Below are positions 2,907-55,138 of a DNA stretch of 64,000 nt, piece after piece. Under the pieces are notes generated by a model. It was not told the origin of the DNA, did no database searches, and saw only the letters and a program-made list of their open reading frames with translations. The DNA comes from Podarcis tiliguerta. Its lineage: Eukaryota. The position numbers and the translations under genes were made by a program. The stretch lies in the NCBI GenBank assembly GCA_965153285.1, contig OZ229111.1; one strand, written 5' to 3'. Within the stretch, counting starts at the first letter, position 1; every line of letters begins with the position of its first letter.

Positions 2907-3270
2907 GGGATGCGAGTGGCACTGGTCTAAAACACTGAGCCTAGGGCTTGCTGATCGGAAGGTCAGTGGTTTGAATCCCCGCGATGGGGTGAGCTCCCAT
3001 TGCTTGGTCCCAGCTCCTGCCAACCTAGCAGTTCGAAAGCACGTCAAAAGTGTAAGTAGAAAAATAGGTACCGCTCTGGCAGGAAGGTAAATGGTGTTTC
3101 CATGCACTGCTCTGGTTTGCCAGAAGAGGCTTAGTCATGCTGGCCACATGACCCGGAAAAACTGTCTGCGGACAAACGTTGGCTCCCTTGGCCAGTAAAG
3201 CGAGATGAGCCCTGCAACCCCAGAGTTTTTCGTGACTGGACCTAAGGTCAGGGGTCCTTTACCCTTTTTT
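2907..3270 (+). mobile_element. Sauria SINE (Squam1)
   Basis: tRNA-like head with B box (ggtttgaatccc), diagnostic core cctgccaacctagcagttcgaaagcacgtc, Bov-B-like 3' end and acctt-type tail. Confidence 0.92.
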
Positions 3271-3652: not shown

Positions 3653-4585
3653 AAATTTCAAGTGAAACCAAACCCCCTTGATTGCTTTGGAACAAGTGGG
3701 GGAAATGGTGAGTAGGTAAAAAGTTATTGTAAATATTTCTCCCTGACTTCACCACTATCAATTGCACCTTCTTGAAGGGTATTTTAAGGAAAAAAGAGCC
3801 ATCAGGCAACAGACTTGTTTGCTACATATTTTCAGAATCTTGGATCACCTTAATGCTTTGGTTTATGTTCTCTGGTTTTTACAAAATTATAAGACACTCT
3901 TCAAAGCCATCAAAGTTTAAGCCATTTGTGAAATGTAAATCTCGCAGTCTTTACACACAAATATGCACCGCATTCCTTTTGTTTCTCCAGCATCCTCTAA
4001 ACAAAATCTAGCTCCCTTTTATATACACTAGAAGTAGAGTAATATGTGCATGTAAAGTGTTAGTTTCCCCGAGTCTATATTAAATTAAATATTTACTTAG
4101 GAAGCACTGTGTCATTTATTATTTATCTCACTCAATTGTGGGATTTATTAAAAAATTGATAAAAACGGCTAGTGGCATCAACCTACAGGTGTTGAAGTGA
4201 GCTCCCAGGCCAAGCCAATTATGAGACCAACAAGCCTATAGTTACTGTGAATTTGAATTTAGCAGTGGATGATATGTGAAAAATAACTTGCATGGGGGGG
4301 CAAGGACACCAGCATGTTTATAGAACTCACTTTGTGGATTTTCCTTTTGTCTGATATTTGCCAGACCTTTCTACTCATATCTGCCCTTTTTCTCTACTTG
4401 ACTTCTCATTTATTTCAATGAGAAATACTGAGAATTCCAGCACTGGAGTCTGGTCATTTTTCCTCTTAGTATTTTTAAAGGTATTTTAGTGGCGTTCATG
4501 CTTTCAGAGGTCACCATGACTGCACAATGATAAGACCTAAACCACCACAAGCCCAGGTTCCATTTCCAGGTTCCCTATCCTCGTG

Positions 4586-5019
4586 TGTCAGGGAACTGCC
4601 ATGGGAGCCAGAGGGAGAGGGAGGGCTCCAGAGGGATTCCGGAGAGCATTCCGGGAGGGAGAGAAGCAGCACATCTTCTGGGGAAGGAAATCAGCGTAGC
4701 ACCAGTGGAGGAGGGGGGCAGATGGGGGAATCGGCGAGGTGGCTCCAAGATTCCTCGCCGGGGACCAGCGGGGAGAGCACGGGTCTTCCAATGCCCACAC
4801 CCTCCCTGCGCAGAAGGCTTCCATGCAGGGAGAGTAGGCGAAGACTAGGCGTCAAAAAACTTTTATGCTGGAAGAAGTTCAAGAAACGCCCACTGACGGA
4901 TTCTGCCAGTGATTGAGACAGCCACGGGTGAGTGGCTGTCCAGACAGAAAGGGTTCACTCAGGCAACCCACCGAGGTGTGGCGCCGGTTTACGCACGAGC
5001 AGCCCCTAGAACCATTACA
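4586..5019 (+). mobile_element. solo LTR (434 bp), probably Gypsy-type
   Basis: TGTCA...TTACA termini and perfect 5-bp TSD TCGTG (4581-4585 / 5020-5024). It is a GC-rich island in AT-rich DNA with an open frame 4587-4916. Confidence 0.85.
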
Positions 5020-5455: not shown

Positions 5456-5811
5456 GGGACGCAGGTGGCGCTGTGGGTTAAACCACAGAGCCTAGGACTT
5501 GCTGATCAGAAGGTCAGCGGTTCGAATCCCCGTAATGGGGTGAGCTCCCGTTGCTCGGTCCCAGCTCCTGCCAACCTAGCAGTTTGAAAGCACGTCAAAG
5601 TGCAAGTAGATAAATAGGTACCACTCCAGCGGGAAGGTAAACGGCGTTTCCGTGCACTGCTCTAGTTCACCAGAAGCGGCTTAGTCCTGCTGGCCACATG
5701 ACCCGGAAGCTGTATGCCGGCTCCCTTGGCCGATAAAGCGAGATTAGTGCCGCAACCCCAGAGTCGGTCACGACTGGACCTAATGGTCAGGGGTCCCTTT
5801 ACCTTTACCTT
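5456..5811 (+). mobile_element. Sauria SINE (Squam1), full length
   Basis: gggacgcaggtggcgctgtgg head, B box ggttcgaatccc, (ACCTTT)n tail, 13-bp TSD tatgcataatgga / tatgtgtaatgga. Confidence 0.95.
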
Positions 5812-20428: not shown

Positions 20429-20560
20429 NNNNNNNNNNNNNNNNNNNNNNNNNNNNNNNNNNNNNNNNNNNNNNNNNNNNNNNNNNNNNNNNNNNNNNNN
20501 NNNNNNNNNNNNNNNNNNNNNNNNNNNNNNNNNNNNNNNNNNNNNNNNNNNNNNNNNNNN
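20429..20560. other. assembly gap (132 N)
   Basis: Run of N. Confidence 1.
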
Positions 20561-21827: not shown

Positions 21828-22191
21828 GGGATGTCGGTGGCGCTGTGGTCTAAACCACAGAGCCTAGGGCTTGCCGATCAGAAGGTCAGCAGTTTGAATC
21901 CCTGTAACGGGTGAGCTCCCATTGCTTGGTCCCAGCTCCTGCCAACCTAGCAGTTTGAAAGCACATCAAAGTGCAAGTAGATAAATAGATACCGCTCCGA
22001 CGGGAAGGTAAATGGCGTTTCAGTGTGCTGCTCTGGTTCGCCAGAAGCAGCTTAGTCATGCTGGCCACATGACCTGAAAGCTGTCTGCGGACAAACGCCA
22101 GCTCCCTCGGCCTATAGAGCGAGATGAGCGGACAACTCCAGAGTCGTCAGTGACTGGACTTAACAGTCAGGGGTACCTTTACCTTTACCTT
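21828..22191 (+). mobile_element. Sauria SINE (Squam1), full length
   Basis: Same consensus with (ACCTTT)n tail and perfect 14-bp TSD tataccacacataa (21814-21827 / 22192-22205). Confidence 0.95.
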
Positions 22192-35514: not shown

Positions 35515-35704
35515 TTCTATCAGTAGCTCAGTGGCAGAGCATCTGCTTTGCATGCAGAAGGTCCCAGGTCCAGTCCCCATCATCTCCAAGCAGGACTGGG
35601 AATGTCCCTTGTTTGAATCATTGTAAAATCCCTGTCCATCAATGTAGACATTGGGAAGCTAGACAGACCAATGGTTTGACTCACTAGCCTCCAGTGTTCC
35701 TAAT
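35515..35704 (+). mobile_element. tRNA-derived SINE (Squam2-like)
   Basis: gtagctcagtggcagagcatctgctttgcatgcagaaggtcccaggt is a tRNA-Ala-like head (A box, TGC anticodon arm). The tail is gctagacagaccaatggtttgactc...tgttccta. Confidence 0.8.
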
Positions 35705-35984
35705 TGTCAGGGGTTCAGGAGCAGAGGCACAGGAGAGGGAGGAAATAGAGAGCGAGGGGGAGGAGTCCGAAGGAAATGTCAGCGATGACAGCAATCCGAG
35801 GTCTCTGAGTCTTTCCAGTGAATCGGAAGATTCACAGAAAGAGGCCCCCATGGTCAGGGCAAGGGGGGTGCCGAGGGGGACACCCCAGGAAGAAGGGGCC
35901 AGGGGGGACTCAGAGAGCAGCAGTTGGAAATCTGGACCAGCGTCCACACCAGAGTGGAGTAGAGGGGAGGAGTCCCAGGCATCG
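35705..35984 (+). repeat. truncated 5' LTR (first 280 bp)
   Basis: Matches 38509-38788 with one mismatch, then jumps directly into pol. Confidence 0.95.
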
Positions 35985-35986
35985 CG

Positions 35987-38900
35987 ATGCAGACAGCAGC
36001 CATTACCGGCACGCTCAGCTCCAAGAAGAAGAAGTTCATCTGGACGGAGCAAGTGGAGCAGTCCTTTCAGAACCTTAAGCGTCTCTTCTCGTCCGAAGAG
36101 CAGCTACTGCATGTGAATCCCAGCAGACCGATGAGAGTTGAAACGGACGCCTCAGACAGAGCCGTGGGCGCAGTCCTGTTGCAGCAGAACCCGCATGGGG
36201 ACTGGAGACCGTGTGCCTTCTACTCTAGAAAGCTCAGCAAGTCAGAGCAGAACTACACCATCTGGGACAGGGAGTTGCTGGCCATTCATGCAGCATTCAA
36301 GGCGTGGCGGCACTTCCTCATCGGAGCCAAACACACAGTGCAGGTTCGCACGGACCATAAGAACCTGGAGTACTGGCGTACGGCACGGTTCCTGAACCAG
36401 CGGCACATCAGATGGGCGGAGTTCTTTGCGGATTTCGACTTCCGGATAGAGTACATCCCAGGCGACAACAACATCATGGCAGATGCACTGTCCAGAAAGC
36501 CGCAATACCTCGAAGAGGCGGCACGAGCAGCGGCCAAGCACATTTTCGCACCGAAAGCGTGGGCGTGCGCCTCAGCAACCGTGGACCTGGATGCTGTCCG
36601 TAGAGCGCTGCAGGAGGACCCCTTCACACAAGCCAAGATGGAGGAGGTGCACAAGGGCACGGTGAAGGACGACGAGTTCCAGATACGCGACGGATTGCTC
36701 ATCCGCAGAGGGGCCCTCTACGTACCGGGAGACGACCTCCGCGCGAAAGTACTGCAGCAGTTGCACGACGCACCCACCGCCGGGCACTTTGGCAAAGAGA
36801 AGACGGCAGAATTAGTAGCCAGAGAGTTTTGGTGGCCCAAGATGCGGGGGGAAGTCGCGGATTACGTCTCGAGGTGCGACACCTGCCAAAGGGCCAAGTC
36901 AGTGCACAAACCACCGGCGGGACTGCTCGAACCGCTGCAGACACCGAGCGAACCGTGGGAGAGGGTGGCCCTGGATTTTGTCACGGATTTACCCAGCTCG
37001 AGGGGCAAGACGGCAGTGCTAGTGGTGGTGGACATGTTCACCAAAATGGCCCACTTCATTCCGTGCGCGAAGGTGGCCACGGCGGAACAGACCGCCAAAC
37101 TGTTCATAGACCACGTGTTCAAGGTTCACGGTCTGCCACGGTCTATCCTGTCCGACCGGGGGCGGCAGTTCATCTCGAACTTCTGGCAGAAGCTGATGGG
37201 TTTCCTGAACGTCAAGATCAACCTAGCGTCCGCAAGACACCCGCAGACCAACGGACAAGCGGAGCGAGTCAACGCAGTCATGCAGCAGTACCTGAGATGC
37301 TATGCAAATCAGCAGCCGGCAACATGGGTGGACTACCTGCCGCTCGCTGAGTTCGCCTACAACAACACGAAGCACGTGTCCACGGGGGTGACACCGTTCT
37401 TCGCCAACAACGGGAGGCATCCCAGAACCTTCCCGGGATTAGAGAGACTGGGGGAGGGGGAGCCACAAGCAGCGGAAGCCTTAGCGTCCGAATTGCAGGA
37501 AGTTCACGAACAGCTTTGGAGGCAGTTAGAACTAGCTAAGCACGCATACAAACTGCAGGCTGACAAGCACAGAAGGGTTGGGGAAGACATACAGGTGGGA
37601 GACTGGGTTTGGTTAGCAGCCCAGGCAGTGCCGACCAGATCGTTAGCGAAGAAGAAGCTCGGACATAGGCAGCTAGGACCTTACCAAGTCGAGGCTCAGG
37701 TCAATCCAGTGGCCTTCCGGTTGACACTTCCGGAGGGATCCAGAATGCACCCAGTGTTCCATAGATCAGTACTCACGCCCTACAAAGCACCTCACAGATT
37801 TCAGGAGCCGGGCACGGCACCAGACCAGCTCAGGGAGAAGTCCACAAGGCGGGGGTCGCCAAGAGGGGAACCCATCAACGAGGTCACAGAGATTTTAGAC
37901 TCGAGATGGGGGGAAGAGGGAGTAGAATATTTTCTCGCCAGCGAAGGTACCCCGGCCAGCGCCAACCGTTGGGTGCCGGACTACGCGTTGGACGCGCCTC
38001 TTCTCAAGGAAGAGTTTCATGCCTTGTTCCCGCAAAGGCCCATGCCAGCCGAGTATTTCGACGACTGGCTTTTCACACCCACGCTTTCAGCCAGCACGTT
38101 CCAGGGGTTCACCTCGGACGAAGAACCGGCACCAGACACACGTTCCCCGGAGGGATCGCCCTCGGGGTTTGCCTCAGACCGCTCTTTTTGGTGGGACGAT
38201 CGACCAGAGGAGGGGTGGAGCAGGAAGTGGCTGGGGGGTCCTTGGCAGGCAACGGCCCCAGAGGTGAACGGGGGAGAGATGGACATGGACGTGCTGGGGG
38301 AGGACCTTGGGTTCGAGCACGGCGGCACAGAGATGGAAGCAGAGGAAATTGAGGTCGGCGAGAGCACGGAGGACGAGCCGGACTTATCCGACTGGATGCA
38401 CGCCACGGGGGACGAACTGTATCCGCCATTCACCCCAACGACGGAGCACCCAGCACCCACACCTGCAGGAGGGGAGGGTGGAAGGGGGGGCTTAGAGGGG
38501 GGGATGGATGTCAGGGGTTCAGGAGCAGAGGCACAGGAGAGGGAGGAAATAGAGAGCGAGGGGGAGGAGTCCGAAGGAAATGTCAGCGATGACAGCAATC
38601 CGAGGTCTCTGAGTCTTTCCAGTGAATCGGAAGATTCACAGAAAGAGGCCCCCATGGTCAGGGCAAGGGGGCTGCCGAGGGGGACACCCCAGGAAGAAGG
38701 GGCCAGGGGGGACTCAGAGAGCAGCAGTTGGAAATCTGGACCAGCGTCCACACCAGAGTGGAGTAGAGGGGAGGAGTCCCAGGCATCGGGATCAGGCAGC
38801 GCGCTGACAGCGGGAGGACATGAGGCAGGAGTGGCCACGCCTCCATCGGAGAGCGAGGAAACGGTCGAGAGGAAGGTGGAAGGCTGCGCGCGCGCGCCAA

Positions 38901-39145
38901 GTTCAAATGTACAGGAGGGGGCAGCAGTTGGCAGCCCGGATAGGGAGCCAGGTCCTAAAGCCCGCCGAAGAGAGAGGGAGGAGTCAGGGGGGTCCACGTC
39001 TGTGTCGGAGGAATCCAGGAAGGAAGGGACCACGGGGGGTAGCAGGACCCAGAGGAGAAAGGAGAGACGGAAGAGGTGGAGTAAGGCTAGAGTCTTAAAC
39101 TGGTGTACAGGGGGCGGGGATTCAGATGGAGCTTCGCCGGTCTAG
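35987..39145 (+). CDS. pol: Gypsy Pol remnant: RT thumb/connection, RNase H, integrase (HHCC, DDE, GPY/F), chromodomain, long acidic/basic tail
   Basis: RNase H: ETDASDRAVGAVLLQ, RELLAI, TDHKNL, ADALSR. Integrase: LHDAPTAGHFG...CDTCQ, ALDFVTDLP, SDRGRQF, QTNGQAERVN, LGPYQV...HPVFH. Chromodomain: EVTEILDSR...EYFL...NRWVP. 1052 aa with no stops; gag, protease and the RT core are missing. Confidence 0.95.
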   Translation: MQTAAITGTLSSKKKKFIWTEQVEQSFQNLKRLFSSEEQLLHVNPSRPMRVETDASDRAVGAVLLQQNPHGDWRPCAFYSRKLSKSEQNYTIWDRELLAIHAAFKAWRHFLIGAKHTVQVRTDHKNLEYWRTARFLNQRHIRWAEFFADFDFRIEYIPGDNNIMADALSRKPQYLEEAARAAAKHIFAPKAWACASATVDLDAVRRALQEDPFTQAKMEEVHKGTVKDDEFQIRDGLLIRRGALYVPGDDLRAKVLQQLHDAPTAGHFGKEKTAELVAREFWWPKMRGEVADYVSRCDTCQRAKSVHKPPAGLLEPLQTPSEPWERVALDFVTDLPSSRGKTAVLVVVDMFTKMAHFIPCAKVATAEQTAKLFIDHVFKVHGLPRSILSDRGRQFISNFWQKLMGFLNVKINLASARHPQTNGQAERVNAVMQQYLRCYANQQPATWVDYLPLAEFAYNNTKHVSTGVTPFFANNGRHPRTFPGLERLGEGEPQAAEALASELQEVHEQLWRQLELAKHAYKLQADKHRRVGEDIQVGDWVWLAAQAVPTRSLAKKKLGHRQLGPYQVEAQVNPVAFRLTLPEGSRMHPVFHRSVLTPYKAPHRFQEPGTAPDQLREKSTRRGSPRGEPINEVTEILDSRWGEEGVEYFLASEGTPASANRWVPDYALDAPLLKEEFHALFPQRPMPAEYFDDWLFTPTLSASTFQGFTSDEEPAPDTRSPEGSPSGFASDRSFWWDDRPEEGWSRKWLGGPWQATAPEVNGGEMDMDVLGEDLGFEHGGTEMEAEEIEVGESTEDEPDLSDWMHATGDELYPPFTPTTEHPAPTPAGGEGGRGGLEGGMDVRGSGAEAQEREEIESEGEESEGNVSDDSNPRSLSLSSESEDSQKEAPMVRARGLPRGTPQEEGARGDSESSSWKSGPASTPEWSRGEESQASGSGSALTAGGHEAGVATPPSESEETVERKVEGCARAPSSNVQEGAAVGSPDREPGPKARRREREESGGSTSVSEESRKEGTTGGSRTQRRKERRKRWSKARVLNWCTGGGDSDGASPV
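38494..38508 (+). other. polypurine tract
   Basis: agagggggggatgga immediately 5' of the 3' LTR TG. Confidence 0.85.
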
Positions 39146-39271
39146 ACCCTAGACGTAGAGCTGGGGCGCTGAGGCTTGGAAATGGAAACTATACTTCAAT
39201 AAAGACTTTGTTACATTACTACCGGCTAGCGTTGGTCCTCTGTGAGCTGGGACCAGGAGCCAGCTCTGACA
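38509..39271 (+). repeat. complete 3' LTR (763 bp)
   Basis: TG...CA, terminal IR tgtcag/ctgaca, AATAAA at 39198-39203. Confidence 0.95.
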
Positions 39272-40503
39272 CTAATGAATGAGCTTTAGTCATTGCAGGC
39301 CAAGAATTATCCACACTCCATACCTCTCATGCTGTCTTGTGGTGTTTAATATAACAGATCCAGTGACAGGCAGTTATGTTGATGTTTCTGGTTCCATGTA
39401 CAAAAACAAAAAATGGAAGTCCAGCTAAAAGAAGAAAAGAGCACTCACATATTTCCTTAAATGACCCATTTGGGAATCGTGTGCAGAGCCACTGTCCTAC
39501 TGTTTGGTCTAGGGCTGGCAGCTGGTGCCAGAAGATCAGCAGTGATATGGTACCAGGGCTCATGTTCTGAGAGGTGGAATGCTAGACAATTTGACAATTG
39601 CCAGACTTCCTCTCCCCATTCCTAGTGGGGTCCTTCCATACATGTAAAATGTTTTCAGTGAAGCTTTTTCACAGGGAGATAAGAGTGATAGGAAAAGCTG
39701 CAGCTGAAGACATTTCAATGAGCTGTTACAAAACACTGAAAAACAGCAAGAAAACACAAGAAAACAAAAGTTGTCACATTTAGATGCAAGGGTTAGGTTA
39801 CTCATTGCTCTTTAGTTGATGCAATAAACATATGTGCATTTCCTATCCAGTTCATGCAATTGATACTTGTTCTCTATTTCCCAACAAGGAAAACCAGAAA
39901 TGCTGCCTTGTCTTAAATGCAGCCAGTAGTCTTTTAGCAGGGACAAAGGGAAGAAGGCATTTAACATTTCTGAAAGCCCTTGTTTTATTAGACTATAACA
40001 CTCAGTTTTGCAGTATTGACTGTTGAGATTTTCTGTGTTTGGGGACCAGGCACTGCAGTGACTCCATGTCACAGCCAGACTACGATGATGAAGTTGCATT
40101 CTGGCATACCGCTGACATTAAAGATCAATGGAGCAACTTATTTCTGTGAAATGGAAAATCCATTAGAATAAAGTATATTGATGAATGATCTGTTGACAAA
40201 TAAGCACTTATTCAAGTTACTCCAAAGACTATAACTATCATGTGCTGCCAGGTCTAATAAATATATTTATTTGGATGAGTTCACTATTGACTGGCTCCTT
40301 ACGCATACTAGCAATATTAGTAGTATACCATGAATATAAAAACAACATCTCATAAGTACAGTTTATTCATTTAATACAGTACCACCAACAGAAGGGCCTC
40401 TCTATTAAGATTCCCTTCTATATAAGGGAACTGTGCTATTGGAGGACTTTGAAAGATAAAGCTACTGGTACAGACAACACAAGTATTACTCAGGTGTTAC
40501 TAT

Positions 40504-54669: not shown

Positions 54670-55138
54670 TCAACTGTGTCGTACTGGTTAGGGTGTCAGG
54701 GTAGGACCTTGGAGACCAGAGTTCAAATTCTTGCTGAACCATGAAGCTCATTGAAACTTGGGCCAGTTACCATCTCTCAGCCCCATCTTCTTCACTGGGT
54801 TGTTGTGTGGGTAAAACCAAGAGGTGGAAGAACTATATACAATATACAGTGGTACCTTGGGTTACATACGCTTCAGGTTACATACGCTTCAGGTTACACA
54901 CTCTGCTAACCCAGAAATAGTGCTTCAGGTTAAGAACTTTGCTTCAGGATAAGAACAGAAATTGGGCTCCGGCTGTGCGGCAGCAACAGGAGGCCCCATT
55001 AGCTAAAGTGGTGCTTCAGGTTAAGAACAGTTTCAGGTTAAGAACGGACCTCCGGAACAAATTAAGTACTTAACCCGGGGCACCACTGTATTGAGCTCCT
55101 TGCCGGAAAGGCAGAATATAAATGTAAGAATAAATAAA
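54670..55138 (+). mobile_element. Squam3-like tRNA SINE interrupted by a mariner MITE
   Basis: B-box gagttcaaatt, ccatgaagctca...ttgggccagt...ctctcag...gggttgttgtg. It resumes after the MITE with ttgagctcctt...(TAAA)n. Confidence 0.7.
54847..55088 (+). mobile_element. Tc1/mariner-type MITE
   Basis: TA|cagtggtaccttgggtta ... taacccggggcaccactg|TA; same family as 2642. Confidence 0.88.

Follow-up and report, generated by a model that had tools for sequence, protein, structure and literature searches.

Introduction

In plants, a pol open reading frame (ORF) that runs into the 3' long terminal repeat (LTR) has been described for the CRM chromoviruses of group A (CRM, Beetle) and for the Galadriel-clade elements Bingo1-4 and 7 of beet, and in CRM group A the LTR-encoded product is the CR motif, which derives from a chromodomain (PMC3059260; PMC3605345). 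Here, we analyzed a stretch of 64,000 nucleotides from the lizard Podarcis tiliguerta (NCBI GenBank assembly GCA_965153285.1, contig OZ229111.1; hereafter the window, with position 1 as its first letter), in which a Ty3/Gypsy chromovirus-like element at 35705-39271 (plus strand, as are all features below unless stated otherwise) shares this layout: as in the plant CRM and Bingo elements, the ORF crosses the polypurine tract (PPT) and the C-terminus of integrase is encoded by the LTR. The resemblance has its bounds, in that the CR motif of CRM lies 3' of the PPT whereas the lizard element carries a chromodomain-like fold 155 codons 5' of it, the lizard LTR encodes a 212-residue acidic/basic tail of low complexity with no Pfam match, and the host is a lizard and not a plant, centromere targeting being a trait of CRM that is not known for the lizard element. 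The element has no CR motif, and its closest relatives are animal and fungal chromoviruses; it appears to be CRM-like in layout and not a member of CRM. A selected, LTR-encoded integrase tail in a lacertid (Podarcis-type) chromovirus-like lineage is, in our view, the likely explanation overall.

Sharing of one DNA between a protein and the LTR is familiar from retroviruses, where nef of the human and simian immunodeficiency viruses (HIV/SIV), sag of mouse mammary tumor virus (MMTV), and bel/bet of spumaviruses overlap U3, the unique 3' region of the LTR. The lizard DNA likewise doubles as coding sequence and U3 (labeling the LTR-coded part as U3 is an assumption), but the viral genes are separate ORFs with their own starts or spliced mRNAs, whereas the lizard overlap is the uninterrupted end of pol/integrase. 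C-terminal tails of integrase are established as well: that of Ty1 holds a bipartite nuclear localization signal (NLS) with a long spacer, that of Ty5 a targeting domain, and that of murine leukemia virus (MLV) binds bromodomain and extraterminal (BET) proteins, and such NLS or tether tails are the commoner precedent in LTR retrotransposons. By analogy, the lizard tail may be likened to them as a disordered C-terminus with short basic or peptide motifs; they are, however, encoded upstream of the LTR, and the likeness is one of layout and not of demonstrated sequence similarity. Fungal and vertebrate chromoviruses (Tf1/Tf2-like, Anolis, and amphibian Gypsy elements with PF00385) provide the closest relatives of the RNase H, integrase, and SH3 regions (35-52% identity), but canonical chromoviruses have a Pfam-positive chromodomain with a median of 12 residues after it, whereas the lizard family has lost the aromatic cage and gained 367 residues. 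A preliminary description of this DNA had pointed to plant CRM as a precedent and knew of none among reptile chromoviruses; consistent with this, the literature, searched apart from Repbase and subscription journals, yielded the plant cases but no account of such a layout in chromoviruses of reptiles or other vertebrates. The layout and the principle are known; what differs is the host group, the type of peptide that the LTR encodes, and its position relative to the chromodomain.

The pol frame crosses the polypurine tract into the 3' LTR

From 35987 to 39145, pol reads as a single uninterrupted frame (1052 codons and the stop). No stop follows the chromodomain-like segment; instead, 155 further codons (the pre-LTR tail; 38042-38506) lead to the PPT (38494-38508), which abuts the start of the 3' LTR (38509-39271; 763 bp, TG..CA, delimited by the repeat and the target-site duplication), and the frame then continues over LTR bases 1-634 as the 212 codons of the LTR-encoded integrase tail (38507-39142), to end at a TAG at 39143-39145. 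The peptide over the boundary of PPT and LTR is ..GGMD|VRGS.., and the ..EGGMD that the PPT encodes in frame is invariant in the relatives. The pre-LTR tail is acidic, with two invariant Trp/Phe-rich motifs (..FDDWLFTPTLSASTF.. and ..WWDD.PEE.W.RKWL..), and the LTR-encoded part is acidic and rich in Ser and Gly before a basic end. The preliminary description had reported a frame without a stop after the chromodomain that crosses the PPT and covers 211 codons, or about 636 of the 763 LTR bases, with an acidic/Ser-rich stretch, PKARRRER, RRKERRKRW, and LNW; all of these were found again.

Inside the LTR, the pol frame has 0 stops over 634 nt and 4 stops in the last 129 nt, and the two other plus-strand frames have 8 and 9 stops. 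Composition-matched resamples (Markov-1) were open over an equal length in 117 of 20000 cases. Codon positions differed in composition over both the LTR-coded part (p = 0.0014) and the pre-LTR tail (p = 0.0003), and did not differ over the flank (p = 0.99). The stop lies 53 nt 5' of the polyadenylation signal AATAAA (39198-39203), which is the sole AATAAA in the LTR and falls in its non-coding last 126 nt; because the stop precedes this only signal, genomic RNA (R-U5...PPT-U3-R) includes the entire frame. As in a CRM-type layout, the ORF crosses the PPT and ends within the LTR, and in the window as well as in the relatives the frame is continuous with integrase, which sets it apart from the separate ORFs of U3 accessory genes of the nef/sag type. 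On the minus strand, an antisense ORF of 338 codons (38017-39033) overlies the tail and the LTR. Only sense Tyr codons, or T-ending codons before Gln or His codons, could close it, and since these contexts are nearly absent here, the antisense ORF looks like a by-product of the sense composition.

Relatives keep the frame and the position of the stop

Relatives were collected by a word search with the tail (four Podarcis muralis clusters), from the members of the clusters, and by a HMMER scan of 1.84 billion representatives; the total came to about 40 proteins, which derive from Logan contigs, P. muralis, and P. lilfordi. A phmmer search with the tail against the 1.84 billion representatives returned only 5 matches, all of them Podarcis or Logan, and repeat masking in other annotations may account for the absence of the tail elsewhere. 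An exact scan of metagenome contigs with the 22-mer over the junction of PPT and LTR gave no match.

In fifteen relatives (12 P. muralis proteins, 2 Logan ORFs, and 1 P. lilfordi protein), the final residue corresponds by homology to the last codon of the pol frame in the window; P0004 stops about 3 residues short, and P0011 is cut earlier. The common end is shared by at least five sublineages, with 50-81% identity in the LTR-coded part, whether compared with the window or among themselves. In that part the lineages are separated by at least 10 distinct indels, ranging from 1 to 18 residues, and all of them are in frame, with the conserved blocks downstream keeping register. Evidently decayed copies (P0029, P0036, P0040, and P0002) are frameshifted or end early, as would be expected of dead DNA. 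When random substitutions were placed on the LTR frame of the window until amino-acid identity fell to 81, 74, or 54%, the simulated neutral frame stayed free of stops in 8, 3.6, and 0.45% of cases, respectively. The preliminary description had allowed that the read-through could be a private stop loss or the LTR indels random with respect to frame; fifteen relatives of at least five sublineages with the same end position, and the in-frame state of every one of the at least 10 inter-lineage indels, argue against both. The common end, the in-frame indels, and the simulations (0.45-8%) agree in supporting a maintained extension of pol/integrase encoded in the LTR. Because the stop is the same, the indels are in frame only, and no stops have arisen despite 20-50% amino-acid divergence, sequence comparison shows the arrangement to be inherited and kept by selection on active lineages.

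Indel figures from Logan contigs, which are among the best-supported rows and serve as supporting evidence and not as a spectrum, point the same way. Contigs of the family carried 1-nt indels at 17-39% of depth right after the stop (39146, 39150). Within the tail, the listed 1-nt indels were at about 10% or less in DNA runs, a cluster at 38919-38924 excepted, and 3-nt insertions reached 14-20%. The excepted cluster of +1 and -1 calls rose to 20% in run X1 and to 27% in the small run X17, whose RNA label is a guess. It looks, at least in part, like an alignment artifact at a cluster of substitutions; +1 and -1 occur on one contig in X17, and one X1 variant is of equal length. The unbalanced depths of the +1 and -1 calls in X1 count against a pure artifact.

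The tail changes faster than the integrase core

Between sublineages, identity was about 90% in the RNase H-integrase core, 84-95% in the chromodomain-like part, 56-85% in the pre-LTR tail, and 50-90% in the LTR-coded part. The tail changes at about 3 times the rate of the integrase core, which bears out the earlier proposal of a fast-evolving module. We then compared observed single-step replacements with the expectation from random mutation of the window codons: replacements were conservative in the integrase core (z = 5.75), with z = 1.28 in the pre-LTR tail, and were marginally conservative relative to neutral in the LTR-coded part (z = 1.68). Given this last value, residue-level selection appears to be weak outside a few motifs, and what is kept is the frame, the stop, the composition, and short blocks.

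Composition and motifs of the tail

The integrase tail comprises 367 residues, the last 212 of them LTR-encoded. It consists to 73% of residues of the disorder type (E/D/S/G/P/K/R/Q) and to 11% of hydrophobic residues, and its isoelectric point is 4.3 in the acidic part and 11.1 at the end. At the extreme C-terminus, two basic clusters are spaced by 25 residues (PKARRRER, 25 residues, RRKERRKR), a pattern that is conserved. Every sublineage that extends this far retains the first cluster, PKARRRER (38954-38977), as PG.KA.RR, with the exception of P0004, in which it has decayed to GLGARS. The second, RRKERRKRWSKAR followed by V-L-N-W-C (39053-39106; RRKERRKRW.. at 39053-39091), is among the better conserved LTR-coded blocks. 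The blocks kept in the LTR-coded part include ..SLSSESEDSQK.., ..RKV..APSSN.., ..PG.KA.RR.., and the terminal ..RKRWS..L.WC..DS... A Pfam search of the tail gave no match at E <= 10, and the ESM Atlas yielded no usable match. The way in which the tail is conserved is that of a disordered stretch interspersed with short motifs. In P0001 (P. muralis), the pre-LTR tail carries an in-frame tandem duplication of 35 residues around ..DDRPEE.W.RKWL.., indicating that the tail tolerates large in-frame length changes.

A chromodomain-like fold without an aromatic cage precedes the tail

Upstream of the tail, the frame follows the Ty3/Gypsy order of reverse transcriptase (RT), RNase H, and integrase. 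The window holds RNase H (36116-36436; PF17917, E 5e-35), the H2C2 zinc-binding domain and catalytic core (rve) of integrase (36731-37243; PF17921, E 4.6e-22, and PF00665, E 8e-10), and an integrase SH3 domain of the Tf2-1 type (37598-37783; PF24626, E 4.6e-15); RT and protease lie upstream in full-length relatives, e.g., P0003. The segment at 37874-38041 had been taken for a chromodomain. The likeness is borderline, with 17 bits to Pfam Chromo (cut-off 25.1; E 0.0055), a score below threshold, and matches to HP1/CBX chains at E 1e-3 to 4e-2, and all three cage residues are gone: in the alignment to CBX5 (E 1e-3), the cage positions Y20, W41, and F44 are N, S, and T. The segment thus has 0 of the 3 aromatics with which group I chromodomains bind methyl-lysine, and the N/S/T state is invariant across all members of the family. 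PF00385 was found in 0 of the 7 clusters of the window family and in nearly all next relatives among the matches listed. Loss of the cage thus falls in the very family whose tail is longest, which as a single case is only a lead.

A second Podarcis family encodes its integrase end in the LTR

The window also contains a solo LTR of a second chromovirus family (4586-5019; 434 bp, starting TGTCAGGG and ending CA, with the target-site duplication TCGTG). Beginning at LTR base 2, in register with the main element, its frame at 4587-4913 stays open over 109 codons and corresponds to the C-terminal tail of the Podarcis proteins P0044/P0045. By tblastn, residues 90-204 of the P0044 tail (the last 115) matched 4587-4913 from end to end (E 9e-19), and by BLASTP the 57 residues that end at the C-terminus of P0044 were 56% identical to the solo LTR frame (E 1e-13). 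In P0044, the match opens right after the purine-tract-like peptide ..GGPGGEVD|VREL... Since the P0044 tail matches the solo LTR from base 2 onward, the second family, too, reads from the PPT into its LTR. This family is about 49% identical to the main element in integrase, has a canonical Pfam chromodomain, and ends in a comparable block, RRR..LLCW, plus DS.S. A preceding ATG at 4527 is accidental and part of the flanking host DNA.

Compared directly by BLASTP, the main tail and that of the second family gave no significant match, and the solo LTR frame matched the main tail at E 0.3. By tblastn, the tails of P0043, P0044, and P0045 aligned weakly with the window at 38012-38689, across the PPT (E 3e-6 to 2e-3), which suggests that the tails of the two families are distantly homologous. 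A search with the integrase/chromodomain region brought up other chromovirus families of Podarcis as well as 97 other chromovirus relatives (for the most part from metagenomic and Logan assemblies, with some named entries of fungi and amphibians), in which a median of 12 residues lies between the chromodomain and the end. Squamate chromoviruses (Podarcis, Anolis) have 117-214 residues after the chromodomain. The Anolis relatives have post-chromodomain tails of 117 residues with a purine-tract-like peptide followed by ..SVM.., which only hints at encoding by the LTR there.

The preliminary description had taken LTRs at 4586 and 33546 as signs of a lineage-wide system. The first holds up, in that the solo LTR encodes the P0044 tail. 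The second does not: in the stretch from 33546 to about 34300 (starting TGTCATGG), the frame that would continue pol shuts after 3 codons, and there is no match to any tail. No end bounded by a target-site duplication was found for this stretch, perhaps an LTR from some other family that is old and has decayed. The arrangement therefore extends beyond one family to two in Podarcis, and the reach demonstrated is that of Podarcis-type lizards and not of squamates at large.

Discussion

That the extension is a real, selected coding sequence we hold with high confidence; a role of the tail in import or tethering is a tentative proposal by analogy, to which we give somewhat less than an even chance. 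In the mechanism we propose, pol, having no stop after the chromodomain-like fold, would run through 155 codons and the PPT into 634 bases of the LTR, and the product would be an integrase with a long, disordered, acidic C-terminal tail. Its terminal module, two basic clusters 25 residues apart followed by L-x-W, would act in nuclear import, in tethering to chromatin or to a host factor, or in both, and may replace the methyl-lysine reading lost from the cage-less chromodomain. The need to reach this module would keep the frame open throughout the LTR while most of the sequence drifts. Since it is copied to either terminus of the element, the LTR-coded DNA would be under a dual constraint, from the protein and from LTR functions. 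In its widest form, the proposal would have a vertebrate chromovirus lineage that moved targeting and import from a cage-less chromodomain to a fast-evolving, disordered, U3-encoded tail with a conserved basic/L-x-W end, with its bases doubly selected as promoter and protein and with thousands of lacertid solo LTRs carrying the frame, open to capture by host transcripts; taken as a whole, we think this unlikely.

Several points weigh against a selected tail with such a role. The relatives are predicted proteins, and databases favor long open copies, so that ascertainment enters the comparison. Among the runs registered as RNA, none contains this stretch, the RNA label of X17 being a guess. Replacements in the LTR-coded part are close to neutral (z = 1.68, as above), and the most conserved terminal block adjoins the presumed core promoter, so that constraint on DNA could account for some of its conservation. 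Taken alone, the solo LTR at 4586-5019 gave no codon-position signal (p = 0.86). AlphaFold2 on the chromodomain-like part plus tail, with an alignment of 11 rows, returned a predicted local distance difference test (pLDDT) score of 38 throughout and is uninformative. The evidence for an NLS or tether consists of pattern and analogy only.

Could the frame be open by chance, whether through a T-poor, purine-rich U3 that happens to be stop-free in one frame or through a lone loss of the pol stop? The LTR is indeed 14% T, a 338-codon antisense frame is open over the same DNA, and the solo LTR at 4586 by itself is only marginally improbable. To this reading we nevertheless give hardly any credence: fifteen relatives from several sublineages share the end residue with their indels in frame, the resampling (117/20000) and the neutral drift (0.45-8%) run counter to it, a second family has the same arrangement, and the antisense frame looks like a by-product. 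A subtler reading would have the frame translated into a functionless peptide, with U3 conserved as DNA (enhancer/promoter) and the frame a tolerated by-product. The near-neutral replacement types in the tail (z = 1.68) would fit it, as would the position of the best conserved block next to the AATAAA/promoter-proximal end and the lack of any known domain in the tail. What it leaves unexplained are the indels in multiples of three (at least 10), the absence of stops at 20-50% divergence, and a stop fixed amid turnover; under constraint on DNA alone a premature stop would be harmless, yet the sublineages stay open almost to the common end, and we consider this reading very unlikely.

The remaining alternative grants that the tail is real and has it act otherwise, as a cleaved accessory protein or through an Arg-rich RNA-binding or nucleolar (Rev-like) end. 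A tail of 367 residues that is modular and looks disordered would suit such a part, Arg-rich clusters are also typical of RNA-binding motifs, and the retroviral ORFs that overlap U3, nef and sag, are accessory proteins. There is, however, no separate start and no evidence of a splice signal or protease site, the frame is continuous with integrase in all relatives, and integrase tails with an NLS or tether (Ty1, Ty5, MLV) are the commoner precedent, and on balance we regard this alternative as quite unlikely.

If the selected LTR-encoded integrase tail is what the element carries, it would constitute a vertebrate counterpart of the plant CRM arrangement, with at least two lizard chromovirus families whose integrase C-terminus is encoded by the LTR. 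It would offer a system for the study of a dual coding and regulatory constraint on U3, and would allow one to ask whether, in animal chromoviruses, nuclear import or the choice of target is governed by integrase tails and not by chromodomains. It would also account for spurious or chimeric gene models in Podarcis, such as LTR-only 'hypothetical proteins' and integrase fused to receptor genes. The further idea of the preliminary description, that each solo LTR deposits a ready-made acidic/NLS coding cassette, has nothing in its favor except gene models predicted automatically, namely P0034, P0036, and P0037, which are 'hypothetical proteins' made up of LTR only, and the chimeric P0011. Gypsy integrase/SH3 (and chromo) domains were also seen in P0046 (P. 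muralis, a vomeronasal type-2 receptor model) and in P0066 (Rhineura floridana, TM9SF2 isoform X2), which are either annotation chimeras or exonized parts of retroelements.

Structure of the copy and other features of the window

The element is flanked on both sides by the target-site duplication CTAAT (35700-35704 and 39272-39276, identical 5-mers), so that, as expected for Ty3/Gypsy, it has direct LTRs of the form TG..CA and a short duplication. Of the 5' LTR, only the first ~280 bp are left (35705-35984), a direct repeat of 38509-38788 with 1/280 mismatches to the 3' LTR; the window holds no other DNA copy of the 3' LTR than this piece. LTR homology breaks off at LTR position 281-284 and is followed directly by pol just 5' of RNase H (deletion junction at 35985-35990), which marks the copy as a young but dead, internally deleted derivative, the deletion having followed insertion. 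Full-length relatives read uninterrupted ..FIKGFAMQTAAIT.. across this junction, where the peptide of the window is ..GFA|MQTA... Gone from the copy are the rest of the 5' LTR, the primer binding site, gag, protease, and most of RT, and with the primer binding site, gag, and protease missing it is not autonomous. Because the deletion fused the 5' LTR to pol, the ATG at 35987 encodes a Met from within pol and is no true start.

In Logan contigs under three species labels, depth climbs at 38508 and is near zero past 39305, and the LTR limits thus agree across the family. Two contigs of run X1 join 39271 to 38509 with exactly 5 bp in between (ACACG, GTAGT) and so read as LTR, 5 bp, and LTR, and several contigs link internal pol positions straight to the LTR start at 38507-38509; such joints suggest that deletion or tandem forms recur within the family.

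Elsewhere in the window, and unrelated to the tail, two families of dispersed repeats that are probably SINE-like (short interspersed elements) were noted, with copies at 2631-2885 and 54838-55092, and at 2988-3167, 5538-5717, and 21909-22088 (89-90% identity). A run of 132 N at 20429-20560 is an assembly gap or a masked stretch.

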